From: Paramoeba atlantica
Lineage: Eukaryota > Protista > Discosea
DNA: 64,000 bases
Assembly (NCBI GenBank): GCA_977017575.1
Contig: CDRNVI010000091.1
Location: 1 to 64,000, forward strand
Reading direction: 5' to 3'
The notes under the pieces were generated by a model. The model searched no databases. It worked only from the letters and a program-made list of their open reading frames with translations, and had not been told where the DNA came from. Within the stretch, counting starts at the first letter, position 1, and every line of letters starts with the position of its first letter. Both the position numbers and the translations under genes were made by a program. Below, in pieces: positions 9,778-17,550 of this stretch.

Positions 9778-10656
9778 AGTGGCGAGGGGGAGAGCGGGCC
9801 TCTTCTCGTGAAGAGGCATTTCAGGTAAGAAACAAAGACGCAGGGATGCATTTTTGAGGTGTTTGGCGTTGCTATTATCGATGCAGTAAGTTAAGGGGAG
9901 TACAACGGGTTTGATGAGGCAAAGAGGGCATGTTCTTTGCAAGGAGATGAGGTATCGTTCATGTGGAATCAACGAATAGTAATATTCTTTCTGTTTTTCC
10001 GAATGCTTTATTCATTTACATTCGCACTTTTTTTGTTTGTTTTCCCGACTGTGATACACTTTTCGTTATTAGAGAAGAATTTTTGTGATACCATTTGTAA
10101 GTTTTGCGTACGATGCTGCTGTTCTGCTTCATTGGTTTTTTCGTTCACGTTCTAACGTTACACGCAGCAGATGATACACCAACATCTAGCAGTCCTCCAA
10201 GGAAACATCGATGCTACGGCTCCAAAACGACTTCTGCAAGCACCTCAGATGATTATCAAGTGCGAGTCCTTACTCAGTACTTGAAGAATCGTCCTGCGAG
10301 TTGGTGCCCCTGTATGCTCCTGGGAGGGTTTCGTATGTGACAAGGGGCAAAGGGTAATAGAAATTCTTTTTCATGTGCCTGCAACTTGTGGAAATTTGTC
10401 ATGGGAGTTCTGTCCACTTCACGTGGTCAGAATAGCGCGTACATCTTACTTTGGTGTAACGAAATTCGGTGGTCAACTTCCTACCGCTGCATTAAGTCAT
10501 ACTCTAATTAATCTGCGATTAAGTGCAAATGAACATGTTGGGGCGGTCGATCTGACTACTCTTCCACCGAATATGACTGACTTGTTTATAGATCGCAACG
10601 AGTTTAGTGGATCTCTTAACCTAACAATGCTTCCTGGCTCCTTGGTAAACTTGGAT

Positions 10657-10682
10657 AAAGATACAGTTTCTGTACCTTGTTG
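10657..10682 (+). other. spliced-leader (mini-exon) 3' segment, not followed by a GT donor
   Basis: AAAGATACAGTTTCTGTACCTTGTTG contains the conserved kinetoplastid SL core (GATA)CAGTTTCTGTAC plus 7 nt ending TTG, followed by CCC. Confidence 0.7.
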
Positions 10683-11501
10683 CCCTTCCTTTCTTTTCCC
10701 GGAAACGGGCATATTCTTACTTTTAAATGCCCGTTTCCGGCTGAAGGCTAGCTGGAACTGTCCCTCTTTGTCGCGGAAGTAGGGGACGCACTTCGCACTC
10801 TTCACCCCTCCCCGGCTCGCTCTCTTCGAGTGAGCTTTCTTCCCTCCCCGGCTCTCTCCTTCTCGTGCTTTCTTCTCCCGGGAGCTATGCGCCATGGTGG
10901 CCTCCCTTGAGGACCACTGGGCGTGCTACAGCGGGAGGACACGTTGTATGCGTGTATAGGGGATGCGAACTTGCACCCCTCTCTCCCTACATGCTGTAGC
11001 GAGTGCGGCGGTAAAGGACCTCCCCATGATGCATCATGATCCACGATAGACCATCTGACAGCATGAACCCACGGCTTGACCGTGTTGCAGCATGAACCAT
11101 GGCTATACGTGCTGTAGCATGACCGATGGGCGACTCGTCTCCTACCTCGCACTCCACTCTCTGTGTGACACCCGTCGTATGCGGGTCATGCGCTGATGGT
11201 ATCGGCCGTCACACAGAGAGACGTATCTCTGCGCCACGAGCGTATGATCACAACCTTTGTGTTTAAATAGATTTGAGGGACCAATAGACCCGGATTGTCA
11301 TACTCAGTGCACCACCCTTTTGTCATACTCAGTGCACCAAAGATACCCAAAAAATCAACCCTTCTGAAATGTCGACATTTTGTCATACTCAGTGCACCAA
11401 GAAAAAGCAATGGGCATGTCACCGCGTACGAACGTGTGTGCTACTGCTGCATAACACCTGAGAGTGTAAAAGTATAAAAAAGTGCACTTAAAAGTATAAA
11501 T

Positions 11502-11647
11502 GTGTTAATTTGAATAATATAGTGTTAAATTGAATAATATAGTGTTAATTTGGATAATATAGTGTAATTTGAATAATCTGAATAATATAGCGTTATTGAA
11601 TAATATACGGTCCAACTTATCCTTCTGCTCCAACTTATCCTTCTGCT
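11502..11647. repeat. 20-bp (GTGTTAATTTGAATAATATA) and 18-bp (TCCAACTTATCCTTCTGC x2) tandem repeats
   Basis: Directly visible tandem copies inside the IS30-like element. Confidence 0.85.
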
Positions 11648-11668
11648 TTCAACTTGTCTTTACCTACT

Positions 11669-12163
11669 TCAAAGCAGGAATAACTCTCGAAATTTCTGAG
11701 GAATCTCCCAGTTGAGACATTTTCGAGGTCGATTATTCAGCCTGTAGGGGCGCTTTCCTCTAAAGCGTAGAGCCTTGTGTACGCTACCGCCTGCATCCTT
11801 ATCCCTTCGGACGAAACGATAAATCGTGGAAGTAGGCGGGGAACCCTGTGAACCAACGATTAATGTATGGGCCACTTGTTCTGGGATATGAAATTTTTTG
11901 AGCCGAGCTTTAACTTTTGCTTCGACGGCTCCACGAATAATCTGAGGCCTCGTCCCTTTTTTACTCAGGCGATTTCGTGCGACACGATTCGCACGGCCAG
12001 CCAAGTAATACTTGCCCGTTTTCTTGCTTCGTACCAACTCTCGGCAAACAGTGCTGTGAGATTTTTTTATAGAACGGGCAATTTCTCTGCGTGTCGATCC
12101 GCTCTCATGCATCGTCTGAATGTCTTGCCTCTCCTGAAGAGTTAATCTTCGATATTTAGGCAT
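11669..12163 (-). pseudogene. IS30-family transposase, N-terminal HTH part only
   Basis: YRRLTLQERQDI...REIARSIKKSHSTVCRELVR...PEQVA...TIYRFVRRDK.AGG.VHKALR matches the IS30 N-terminus; the DDE core is missing. Confidence 0.8.
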
Positions 12164-12744
12164 ATAAAGTGCGAGTTTCGATTAGAAAGAAAAGCTACTA
12201 ATTATGATAAAATATGTACCTCTTGGTGCACTGAGTATGACAATCCTATAAATTGTGGTGCACTGAGTATGACAATTTGGTGCACTGACATTGACAATCC
12301 ACCAGATGTTACAAAGCTTCCCTCGGGGTTGAAGTACCTTAATCTTCATGCCAATCGACTCACGGGAGTTGTGGATCTGTGTCATCTCCCAGGAAATTCA
12401 AGAGGATTTGAAATATCGTTGCACAACAATGATTTTACAGCATATTTAAGCAAACAAAAATATGCTCCTACGGCGTGGATTGAACGCGATGTGCCGCGAA
12501 TGTCCAAACGTGAATATGAAAAAAGCTTAAAAACGTAGATTCTGGGCGTCCTGTTTCTCCATGTATTTTTTCGTGCTTTAGTTAGATGCGCAGTCTTTTC
12601 TCTTCTGTGCTTCCTCCCTAGCCAATGTCGGAAACATTCCATAGCGAAGCTGTTTTTTTATGTGTGTTGAAATCGTGTAAAACCCTTGCAAATACATTTT
12701 TACAAAATCTTTTTTCTATATTTTTACCCTCTTCTTACGTAAAA

Positions 12745-14562: not shown

Positions 14563-17550
14563 AAGGGGGGCTCGTTTATTGTTAACATTCGTTTATTGTT
14601 AACAATGAATTAATTCATTTATTGTTAACATTCGATTATTGTTAACATTCGATTATTGTTAACATTCGATTATTGTTAGCAATGAATTAATTTCGGTTTT
14701 TTCGTGTGGCTTTCGAATTTTTTTGTTCCTTATGGTCATGTTTTATATCGTTCATGATAAGGAAAATGATACGCTTAACGATATGCGAAACAATGCTATT
14801 GAAACAACAGACTTTCAGTCGCCCGACGATCGCAGCCTCCAGAGATAAAACGTTGAGAAGTCAAGTAAACTGTACCTCACCCGACATCGCACTTCGAATC
14901 CCATAACTCAGTTTTGGATAAAACTGTATGGCAATTGAAAACTGCGTAGTTCCCTAAAGAGGTGTCATTGGAGAGTCGTTAGTAGCTCCGGCGATTACCA
15001 GTGACCTTCAGCAACCTCCAGAGAGTGCCCAAATACTTCTCATTGTTAACAATATTCGAACTTTCATTGCAACTCGTGTAATGTTGACATTGGAGGGTAA
15101 AAGTTCGATTATTGTTACAGTGTACACAATTATTAGTGTAACAATAATTAGTAAAACAAAAATTAGTAAATTTTTAATTAGTAAAACATTTTGCAAAATT
15201 CAGGTTTTACACCTTACATTTTTTTTTTTTCGGAATTCTATTTTTTTTTACGAAAAGTTTTCAGATTACTATGTCGCACGACATCGGAGAAATGATATTG
15301 CTCAGCAATCTGATAAGTGCTTCGTCTAGCAACACGCCCTCCGGAACTTCCTTAACAGATGAGCAAAAGAATTGGTTATTCGAACACACTCGTGGTGTTT
15401 TTCGGGGCGAAGATGTTCGACGAAAGTTTGAGCTGAAATTTCATCGAAGTCTCAGTTCAGCCGCTATCACCAAGTACAAGCGCATTGCGCGTTTGGATGA
15501 CGTTGGTTCTAGTGGTCGAAAGAGTCTTCTCACGGAAGACGAAGAAGCTCAGTTGTTAAAAGCTTTTTTGCTGATTCGACGAACTGGCGTTGCCGTCGAC
15601 GCAGCTCGCGTAGCCAACATTGCGAAAGGTATCAGAGAACAGCGACAGACGGGATCTACAGTGCTGAACGGTGGCACGTTGAAGTTTTCGATTTCTTGGG
15701 CAAATTCTTGGATGCACCGCAATGGCATTAAGGTGCGACGGGCAACTACAACTCGAACTGTGACACCTATTGAAGTTGCACAGGCAGCTAATGTATTTTT
15801 TTCTCATCTACGTGGCCTAAAATCTTTCGGTGTTCGAAAAGAGCTTGTTTTTAACGCGGACGAGTTTTTCGTTGGTCTTTCTCCAGAAGGCTCAAACATG
15901 AAGTGGACTTGGGAGCGAATTGACGTCGGAGAAAGTAGAAGTGTTGCAATCCAGAATCGCAAAGGGGGTTTCACTTGTACGGTGCTAACGAATGCTGCTG
16001 GTGATTTGAATCTTCTACAATTCATTTTTCAGGGTACCTCCCGCATGTTTGTCGACATTGAACACAACGATCGAGTTCTACAGTGCGCTCGGACAGGATC
16101 TCACTTTCAGGATTCAAGCACTTGGGCCGAATTTCTCGAAAGATTTCTTGATATTGTTGATGTGGAGAGGAGCAAACTTTCAGACGTTAACACTCCCGCT
16201 CTCCTTATCATAGATGGTGCAACACAACACAAAGACTCTGCCCCGGCGCTTTCCTCCAAAAACTGCAAGTGTGTAGAAATTCCGCCTAAAATGACTCACG
16301 TTTTTCAGCCGGCGGATCAGTTTGTGATATCTGGGTTGAAAGTCAAGGCTCGAGCACTTTTCAATGATTATGTTGCTCGCATTTTTGCCCGTCAAAATGT
16401 CGAAGATGCCGTCCATGAAATGGTTATGTCTTCCGCTTCACATCTCCGAACGCAAAAAGTCACGCTAATTACCAAAGCTATGCGAGAAATTACTCGTGCT
16501 CAAGTCATTGCTTCTTGGAAAGTTAGGGGTATAACTGCCGCTCTTTTTGATGAAACTGAGATGTGTACTCCGACACGAGCCGACGCGTACGCATCCTTGC
16601 TCACCGACAGCGAACGTGAAACAGTCAGCAGACATGGAGATGAGCTACAAGAAATGCACGTAAATGTTAACGTTGATGAAATCGAACCCCCCGAAGACCA
16701 AGATATTCGACAGGAAAATATTCAGCATATTGTCTCTCTTCAACGCAAGAAACGAGGTCGTCCTCCCAACCCCAGTCTTTCAGAACGGCTTGAGTCAAAT
16801 AGAATTGAGAAGGAAAAAAAGAATCAAGCTCGTGAGGAAGGATACAAACTGAAAGAACAGACAAAAGGCATGAGTCGAGCTCAGAAGAAGTTATTTATTT
16901 CTCAAAAGAAGTGTGCAAAACTAGATCTATGGGGTTTCGGGAAGACTTCTTCTGAAATTGAGACATCCGCCAGTGCAGAAAATACATTTTTCTCTGAAGC
17001 TACGTCTATATGCACGCCTATTCGTTCAACTCCTCGAAAGGTCCAGTCAGATAAATACAAATGCATGCACAATAATCACATTGACTATAGCAGCGATTAT
17101 GAAGACAGTTCGGAATTTGAAGGGGAAAGTGAAACGGAAAGCGAGCAAGATTTCTGTGAGCAATATTTCTATGAGCAAGATTTTTATTAATATTATTTTT
17201 TCTGGGTGTTTTTTACTCTGTGCTACAGACACATATTACTTTCCCCGCTCCTGATTTTTTTCTGAATCTCTGACTTTCTTGTTCGTTGTATTCCTATTTT
17301 TAAAAAACTTTCTTCGCTCCTCGAACGCGAAACATCGCTCTCTTGTATTTAAGACATTTTATCAAGTTGGCAAATTTTTTGGGGGCAGCGCAAAAATTAG
17401 TAAAACAAAAATTAGTGAATTTTTAATTAGTAAAACTTTTTTATTATTTTACAATAAAAGTTTTACTAATTTTTGCGAGCACTGTAACATGCGATTATTG
17501 TTAGCAAAAAATGCTCGAAAAATTTGATAACAATAAACGATCCCCCCCTT
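14563..17550 (+). mobile_element. pogo/Fot1-like DNA transposon (~3.0 kb)
   Basis: TIRs AAGGGGGG(G)(C/A)TCGTTTATTGTTA, TA at 14561-62 and 17551-52, subterminal 17-bp repeats at 14575-14690, one long ORF. Confidence 0.85.
15271..17190 (+). CDS. pogo-family transposase (CENP-B-type HTH plus DDE_1 domain), uninterrupted
   Basis: EEEAQLL...FSISWANSWMHRNGI HTH; VFNADE, LLIIDG, IPPKMTHVFQPAD catalytic motifs; acidic tail. Confidence 0.88.
   Translation: MSHDIGEMILLSNLISASSSNTPSGTSLTDEQKNWLFEHTRGVFRGEDVRRKFELKFHRSLSSAAITKYKRIARLDDVGSSGRKSLLTEDEEAQLLKAFLLIRRTGVAVDAARVANIAKGIREQRQTGSTVLNGGTLKFSISWANSWMHRNGIKVRRATTTRTVTPIEVAQAANVFFSHLRGLKSFGVRKELVFNADEFFVGLSPEGSNMKWTWERIDVGESRSVAIQNRKGGFTCTVLTNAAGDLNLLQFIFQGTSRMFVDIEHNDRVLQCARTGSHFQDSSTWAEFLERFLDIVDVERSKLSDVNTPALLIIDGATQHKDSAPALSSKNCKCVEIPPKMTHVFQPADQFVISGLKVKARALFNDYVARIFARQNVEDAVHEMVMSSASHLRTQKVTLITKAMREITRAQVIASWKVRGITAALFDETEMCTPTRADAYASLLTDSERETVSRHGDELQEMHVNVNVDEIEPPEDQDIRQENIQHIVSLQRKKRGRPPNPSLSERLESNRIEKEKKNQAREEGYKLKEQTKGMSRAQKKLFISQKKCAKLDLWGFGKTSSEIETSASAENTFFSEATSICTPIRSTPRKVQSDKYKCMHNNHIDYSSDYEDSSEFEGESETESEQDFCEQYFYEQDFY

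Follow-up and report, generated by a model that had tools for sequence, protein, structure and literature searches.

Site-specific retrotransposons are known for rDNA, spliced leader (SL) genes, telomeres, and microsatellites. In mechanism, R2 and its derivatives come closest to the elements described here, which comprise a non-coding retroposon with an SL-derived head and a set of R2-like retrotransposons. R2 and the animal SIDEs resemble them in carrying a single ORF with RT, CCHC, and a C-terminal restriction-like endonuclease, in showing strict specificity for a repeated target, in lacking poly(A), in duplicating the target little or not at all, in having 5' junctions that vary, and in supporting non-coding hitch-hikers that use the 3' end. 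R2 is unlike them in its target, which is rDNA rather than an LRR codon boundary or, for another family, (TG)n. Furthermore, the 5' end of the present elements is a copy of the host SL, and no HDV-like ribozyme was detected here with Rfam. Unlike a SIDE, the retroposon is no internal-deletion derivative of any autonomous copy that was read, and only the head and a tail module of ~30 nt are common to both.

The closest systems with respect to host and the link to the SL are CRE1/CRE2, SLACS, and CZAR, which are likewise kinetoplastid non-LTR elements with a restriction-like endonuclease and a tie to the SL (PMC12278014; PMC5814959). CZAR and SLACS insert between SL nt 11 and 12 (PMC5814959), and the insertion point of this group adjoins SL nt 13, where the retroposon head starts, which can be taken as a lead only. 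The CRE clade lives inside SL RNA genes and usually ends in poly(A), whereas the present elements have part of the SL as their own 5' terminus and occupy LRR genes or microsatellites. Judged by the two CRE criteria of insertion at SL nt 11/12 and poly(A), these elements do not qualify, as their copies are found in LRR genes, (TG)n, and other sites and lack poly(A). Any kinship of the R2-like proteins with the CRE clade is conjectural, with no CRE sequence having been compared.

In dinoflagellates, DNA-encoded SL remnants, sometimes in the form of tandem partial SLs, mark reverse-transcribed trans-spliced RNAs (PMC5585692; PMC6050394). The same pattern of SL remnants is seen genome-wide here, and these retrogenes are the closest system in what the SL tag means. 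They differ in that the SL-tagged sequences here are mostly retrotransposons and the non-coding retroposon, not cellular genes, that the host is a kinetoplastid, and that the head of the retroposon has been cut back to nt 13 and adjoins a fixed target. In their effect on a gene family, the nearest cases are RIME/ingi in RHS genes and TcTREZO in MASP pseudogenes, where members of a multigene family are hit again and again at an equivalent position and become pseudogenes; together with NARTc/L1Tc they also resemble the present system in that short non-autonomous elements are partnered with autonomous non-LTR elements (PMC7563717; PMC5814959). However, these trypanosome systems work with an endonuclease of the APE type and show the Pr77 5' hallmark, poly(A) tails, and target duplications, and an SL head or LRR target is not found in any of them.

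Reviews of kinetoplastid retroelements list only INGI, CRE, VIPER, and TATE, with CRE confined to SL genes (PMC12278014). A limited literature search yielded neither a report of an SL-headed or LRR-homing retroelement in kinetoplastids nor a report of DNA-encoded SL tags of retroposed RNA in these organisms. Such tags are established in dinoflagellates, and here they are encountered at ~900 sites in a kinetoplastid.

The window considered here is a stretch of 64,000 nucleotides, in which an insert at 10657-11256 interrupts an LRR gene. The LRR frame on the 5' side ends with TTG GTA AAC TTG GAT (LVNLD) at 10656 and resumes from 11257 with TTG TGT TTA AAT AGA TTT GAG GGA (LCLNRFEG, then PID). 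Window positions 9900-10656 align over their full length to G000:C83:63270..62511 (97%), and positions 11257-11460 do so to C83:62510..62307 (99%). Because the two flanks are adjacent in C83, exactly 600 bp are absent from that second copy of the locus, save that a single T at the boundary can be assigned to either side. The C83 locus is known from these alignments rather than from a reading of its letters. An initial annotation had proposed that removing this segment restores an in-register LRR and that an empty allele should be sought; the flanking frames and the C83 copy, with its 97-99% identical flanks, bear out both. The filled junction between insert and flank was found only once in the genome, in the window, and a paralogue at C83:107127-107887 (80% identical) carries neither the retroposon nor the IS30-like insert beside it. 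Overall, the best explanation, and one that is considered probable, is a recent and still polymorphic insertion of a non-autonomous non-LTR retroposon. Its presence and absence within one assembly shows that the family is active now and hence experimentally tractable.

The gene that received the insert is broken. Its 5' part (10114..10656, plus strand), delineated by ORFs and repeat pattern, has a signal-peptide-like start, a Cys-rich cap, and LRR units. A 35-nt piece of LRR coding sequence beginning LCLNRFEGPID (11257..11291, plus strand), recognized from the sequence and the C83 alignment, separates the retroposon from a second insert, and the 3' part of the gene follows at 12301..12541 on the same strand (ORF 12269-12538). 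The N-terminal ORF at 10104-10340 and the LRR ORF at 10375-10782 lie in different frames, and the gene thus apparently carries a frameshift besides its two inserts. When the broken pieces were scanned separately with Pfam, without being joined, no LRR was detected in the short 5' piece, and the 3' piece gave only weak, sub-threshold hints of LRR_4 and LRR_1, whereas LRR_1 exceeds the Pfam cut-off in the sister gene. The LRR status of the window gene therefore rests on its visible repeat pattern and on that sister gene.

The second insert (11292..12300, no strand assigned) is an IS30-like DNA transposon remnant with HTH_38 in a minus-strand ORF at 11669-12163. Its ends are built of repeated 20-mers (TTGTCATACTCAGTGCACCA), for which there are ~30 end-matches genome-wide. 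The remnant is present in both copies of the locus, the C83 version being ~870 bp longer, and must therefore be older than the retroposon insertion. Thus, the target gene was already dead when the retroposon arrived, and the new insertion would have been neutral. Another DNA transposon of this kinetoplastid-type genome is represented in the window by a 639-aa ORF at 15271-17190 with a DDE_1 (pogo/Tc1-like) transposase domain.

The insert belongs to a non-coding mobile family, of which it is a very young copy. A first look at the genome gave 367 candidate copies; those that were scored are 95-100% identical, and the window copy (plus strand) is 100% identical to the copy in L004 over 545 aligned columns. 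Copies are frequently 5'-truncated and share a fixed 3' end, either ...GAGCGTATGATCATAACC or a variant ending ...ATGATATCATAT. No credible ORF is present in the insert, its spurious ORFs being without a Pfam match, and the element matches nothing in Rfam, be it a ribozyme, a tRNA, 7SL, or any other family. Copy number, the lack of an ORF, 5' truncation, and the fixed 3' end together point to a non-autonomous element that is copied by reverse transcription. The 5' domain contains a perfect 14-bp hairpin (inverted repeat I3, 10699..10740), and the 3' domain contains a long hairpin with 18-bp arms (I1, 11157..11220), both recovered by repeat search and in predicted folds. The 3'-terminal module (11226..11255), defined by tail alignment, consists of a TCTCTG box (11226-11231), a spacer, and an ATGAT box (11244-11248), and ends in AACC.

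The window insert lacks poly(A), and a search for terminal inverted repeats and target duplications revealed neither, as the first reading of the sequence had stated for poly(A) and a clean target duplication. That reading had also offered an SL-headed, SINE-like element as one of two alternatives and had called for a search for further SL-headed copies. Such copies exist, the family having 61 with a common junction and seven, the window copy included, of a rarer variant, and the high copy number and identity of the family support the alternative. By being short, non-coding, interspersed, and present in many near-identical copies, the family meets the description of a SINE-like or SIDE-like element. 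It does not meet that of a canonical SINE, with a head derived from a Pol III gene and an internal promoter, as its head is derived from the SL and no Rfam family was matched.

Canonical trypanosome SL patterns (T. cruzi/T. brucei type) are absent from the 45.7-Mb genome, and the SL RNA gene was found via the core of the element itself (CAGTTTCTGTAC). The gene has a 38-nt exon (L036:1482-1519) followed by GTATGAGAAGC (GTATGAG). There are 38 SL RNA genes in the assembly, with arrays at ~2.56 kb spacing on C97 and C107, and some are linked to a 5S rRNA gene on the opposite strand in a 1454-bp unit (L036:1-3021, equivalent to G000:C3:779248-782268). Two variant SL exons (GTCCC, GGTACAG) are also present. 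The host is a kinetoplastid protist. The first 26 nt of the insert (10657..10682, plus strand), AAAGATACAGTTTCTGTACCTTGTTG, are identical to nt 13-38 of the host SL exon (L036:1494-1519), including the species-specific 3' end CCTTGTTG. The head had originally been recognized as the 3' 26 nt of a kinetoplastid-type SL, a claim that would have failed had the organism's own SL differed in the core. Instead, all 26 positions agree, and on the strength of this identity the match is not attributable to chance.

Most copies of the retroposon are flanked by LRR coding sequence in one register, L-x-x-L-x|L-x-x-N-x-F-x-G. The LRR frame starts immediately after half of the 3' junctions (15/30), compared with 8% for positions drawn at random from the window (P=2e-9), and a few more junctions lead into degenerate LRRs; roughly one-third of the copies lie outside recognizable LRR sequence. 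On the 5' side, AT precedes 19 of 22 full-length heads, whereas among 144 uninterrupted LRR units the corresponding codon ends in AT in only 21% (P=9e-11). SL nt 10-12 read GAT, and the C83 empty allele assigns the GAT at the window's junction to the target. The AT bias and the sequence of SL nt 10-12 are thus read as an overlap of 1-3 nt used in making the 5' junction, although this overlap is an inference. If true, homing of a lineage to one codon boundary of a protein-coding repeat would represent a new kind of target, and it would erode or diversify a family of LRR surface proteins.

Autonomous elements that could serve such a retroposon are present in the genome, which holds elements with RT, CCHC, and a PD-(D/E)xK nuclease and gave 98 scored C-terminal matches; most of the R2-like families are known by their location only, without their sequence having been read. 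The example at L056:2190-6773 encodes 1528 aa with an RT recognized by Pfam and resembles R2 proteins of solved structure over a stretch that spans both the RT and the C-terminal nuclease (E=4e-32); its motifs include a CCHC knuckle (CPIC...H...C) and the nuclease signature RPD...ELT...K. A search of protein databases gave no named match for the R2-like ORF. The N-terminal half of the L056 protein (L056:2190-4500) has no Pfam match and displays three Cys/His repeats (C-x-H-x-C...C-x-H-x-C-C-K), which may be a DNA-binding part. Likewise, Rfam found no ribozyme or other family in the 5' regions of the R2-like elements, and a self-cleaving ribozyme at the 5' end would be pure speculation.

Some of these elements and the retroposon have the same target position, as judged from L056, L005, and L013 against the retroposon copies. 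The L056 element has the same SL head and the same LRR position, with ~2 codons lost on its 5' side, and L005 holds a 99% identical copy that ends directly at TTG AGC AGA AAT CAG TTT TCT GGT (L S R N Q F S G). A second R2-like family, with 58% protein identity, ends 0 nt before a retroposon copy in L013, and a third does so in L044. Another assembly of this organism in the public domain (ENA ERZ24900291) yielded four more R2-like families, and these, too, have SL nt 13-38 at their start. One of the four is a sister family with another target, an element headed by SL nt 13-38 (L061:2418-7200; ctg3877l) lying in a long (TG)n microsatellite and carrying a duplicated unit of ~55 nt in its 3' UTR. 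A segment of ~65 nt ending ...CATGATAAAAAACATAAAA lies between the normal 3' end of the L056 element and its LRR target (L056:6876-6938) and may be a very short tandem hitch-hiker.

The 3' ends suggest a further connection. Of the 11 element tails that were aligned, seven belong to R2-like elements; most of these seven, like the retroposon, have a TCTCTG box, 11-14 nt, an ATGAT box, and then 7-12 nt, and this module was found in eight element families. Tail variant B of the retroposon and the R2-like family of L013 have 11 nt of terminal identity, the longest match found. However, the terminal 13-mer of the retroposon, TATGATCATRACC, occurs in no autonomous element and, outside the retroposon, only in five unrelated matches. 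When the retroposon was compared by BLAST with the first 20 RT-bearing loci (L037-L056), only the 26-nt head matched. Because the autonomous tails share only a short motif and the 13-mer is private to the retroposon, no specific partner family can be identified.

From the SL head, 3' module, and target that the two kinds of element share, the best-supported mechanism is that R2-like elements mobilize the retroposon in trans by target-primed reverse transcription, with cleavage and use of the template both inferred. The R2-like elements would supply proteins in trans, and their endonuclease would nick LRR coding DNA at L-x-x-L-x|L-x-x-N-x-F-x-G. Reverse transcription, primed by this nick, would start at the 3' module of the retroposon RNA, and the far end of the cDNA, complementary to the SL, might then be joined to the upstream target at the 1-3 nt overlap, with (G)AT preceding SL nt 13. 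A nick-primed route of this type would leave neither poly(A) nor a target duplication. What the initial annotation had called an unusual integration route can thus be explained by R2-like elements with a restriction-like endonuclease, for which neither feature is needed.

The junction between the head and the body of the retroposon (10682..10683 in the window) exists in two forms. The initial annotation observed that the head continues with CCC rather than with the GT donor of an SL RNA gene, which is correct for the window and the other copies of the 600-bp form (SL-CCC, seven in all) and incorrect for 61 copies of a 614-bp form in which GTACATTTTGCTAG stands between the SL and CCC. This 14-mer, located directly behind the SL exon end, starts with GT, ends in a pyrimidine-rich run and AG, and has no flanking direct repeat. 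The common form is therefore the kind of parent that the initial annotation had asked for, with polypyrimidine-AG at the junction. An SL end joined where the parent has polypyrimidine-AG is the mark of a retrocopy, and this criterion is met (...CATTTTGCTAG|CCC versus SL|CCC).

The arrangement suggests a route from one form to the other. In a transcript of a 614-bp copy, the pyrimidine-AG that the element itself provides 14 nt after the head would act as the trans-splice acceptor. A fresh SL would thereby take the place of the old head and the 14 nt, and the spliced RNA could then be retroposed. Because the sequence upstream of the AG is itself SL, trans-splicing onto this internal acceptor would give exactly SL|CCC. 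In the absence of RNA data, trans-splicing of the element transcript at its own AG followed by reverse transcription remains an inference, to which slightly better than even chances are given. To that extent, the other alternative first offered for the insert, a reverse-transcribed copy of a trans-spliced RNA, gains support from SL|CCC and the parental AG, and it is supported that the two alternatives are true together. Removal of the 14 nt as a cis-intron would be sterically implausible.

Whether the 600-bp form arose once or repeatedly is relevant to this proposal. The 600-bp copies carry diagnostic bases of at least three sub-lineages, and a tree forcing them together was rejected (lnL difference 30.4, p-AU 0.0007), with six of the seven copies having been read. 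Copies differ by just 0-10 substitutions on very short branches, and recombination or template switching could mimic polyphyly. A retroposon copy in L005 lacks 12 nt instead of 14, which is not explained by an AG acceptor. In predicted folds, the 614-bp form has z=-5.7 and the 600-bp form z=-4.2, and loss of the 14 nt removes one strand of a helix (GCUAGCC) and the head hairpin of the 5' domain. A 5' domain damaged in this manner could explain why the 600-bp variant is rare, a link that is untested. No AG|GTACA source locus was found in the assembly, and no source was found in which GTACATTTTGCTAGCCC is preceded, two positions earlier, by an AG or by a base other than T. The 614-bp form thus cannot regenerate SL|GTAC by canonical trans-splicing, and how this common form keeps its head is unexplained.

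SL junctions are not limited to these elements. The SL exon end, GTACCTTGTTG, is followed by a non-intron base (not G) at 929 sites, compared with 26 for the control, and the sequence that follows is often a T-rich 5' UTR and sometimes tandem partial SLs. The SL core together with 12 upstream bases is present at ~585 sites, and among 100 of these that were listed, ~89 reach back at least to SL nt 8, most of them to nt 3 and some to nt 1. These counts and far-reaching heads mean that this organism routinely reverse-transcribes spliced RNAs bearing the SL. Among the elements with such heads, those that home to LRR genes are the ones whose head starts at SL nt 13. SL tags bear on which RNAs are reverse-transcribed, on how 5' junctions form without target duplication, and on a possible role of trans-splicing in the life cycle of a mobile element.

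The most serious competing explanation dispenses with trans-splicing. The SL head would be an inherited 5' module, perhaps left by an ancestor that lived in SL RNA genes like CRE/SLACS/CZAR, and the 600-bp form would be an ordinary 14-bp deletion that spread and recombined. Such a history is in keeping with the identical head and 14-nt junction of 61 copies, with the lack of an AG|GTACA source locus, with copies so similar that recombination could mimic polyphyly, and with the 12-nt deletion in L005 at the same spot. A head that starts at SL nt 13, when CZAR and SLACS insert at nt 11/12 (PMC5814959), is a suggestive coincidence in the same direction. It is harder to reconcile with the precise loss, on several backgrounds, of a 14-mer that has no flanking direct repeat. 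Moreover, heads with 26 of 26 positions identical to the species' SL are found across R2-like families with only 45-55% protein identity, whose adjacent 5' UTRs cannot be aligned. The R2-like copies in L056 and L057 are 99% identical but differ in their SL/body junction, and some copies of sister subfamilies have heads that begin at SL nt 6 or 8, beyond the reach of any 26-nt parent. Along with slippage-like duplications at heads (AAAGAT AAAGAT...), several of these points argue that heads appear to be renewed rather than merely inherited, as far as sequence comparison alone can tell. Thus, purely inherited heads are still possible but are regarded as unlikely.

Renewal can be taken further, to the proposal that the R2-like superfamily and its non-coding hitch-hiker take the 5' end afresh from the SL in each round of copying, by trans-splicing or by a template switch of the RT onto SL-bearing RNA, and that LRR-homing members trim or join the SL at nt 12/13, next to the CRE/SLACS/CZAR cut point. 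In this full form the proposal is tentative and its truth is doubted. If true, a lineage once specific for SL genes would have been re-targeted to a protein-coding repeat while keeping its SL 'handle'. Segments complementary to the SL in the 5' region may assist in acquiring it. Significant anti-SL segments were found in L056 and three sister subfamilies, but the main family shows only a weak one and others none, so that the feature is not universal.

Three other explanations, each judged to have almost no chance of being correct, start from real features of the insert. An orphan SL locus, meaning a unit of an SL RNA gene that was displaced or has degenerated, would account for 26 nt of SL exon and, in the common form, for the GTA that follows as at the start of the SL intron. 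This reading is refuted because the insert has SL nt 13-38 but lacks nt 1-12, the intron (GTATGAG...), and the tandem 5S-linked unit; also, the other 574 nt are unrelated to the SL repeat, and hundreds of copies are dispersed at LRR sites. Direct joining of the SL to downstream sequence would suit a one-off processed pseudogene of a cellular trans-spliced mRNA, which is refuted by copy number and is at odds with fixed 5' and 3' ends, site-specific insertion, and the lack of poly(A) and coding capacity. A DNA transposon, MITE, or intron-like element (introner) would fit the precise boundaries, the length divisible by 3, and the GT after the head in most copies, but not the lack of terminal inverted repeats and target duplication, the tandem element-element junctions, the missing AG at the 3' end for an in-frame splice, or the 5'-truncated copies and variable head starts, which are typical of reverse transcription.

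Some smaller irregularities were noted at the SL-derived ends. The bases corresponding to SL nt 1-2 are variable in heads, often giving ATC instead of AAC, which might reflect reverse transcription through the modified nucleotides of cap-4. Tandem partial SLs are common (TACCTTGTTG, CTTGTTG). Fragments of the SL head are also repeated just upstream of full heads, as at L057:2700-2770 (AAAGATACAGTTTCT..CACTGTAT) and in L021 upstream of position 2106 on the minus strand, and these look like the products of abortive or multiple template switches at 5' junctions.
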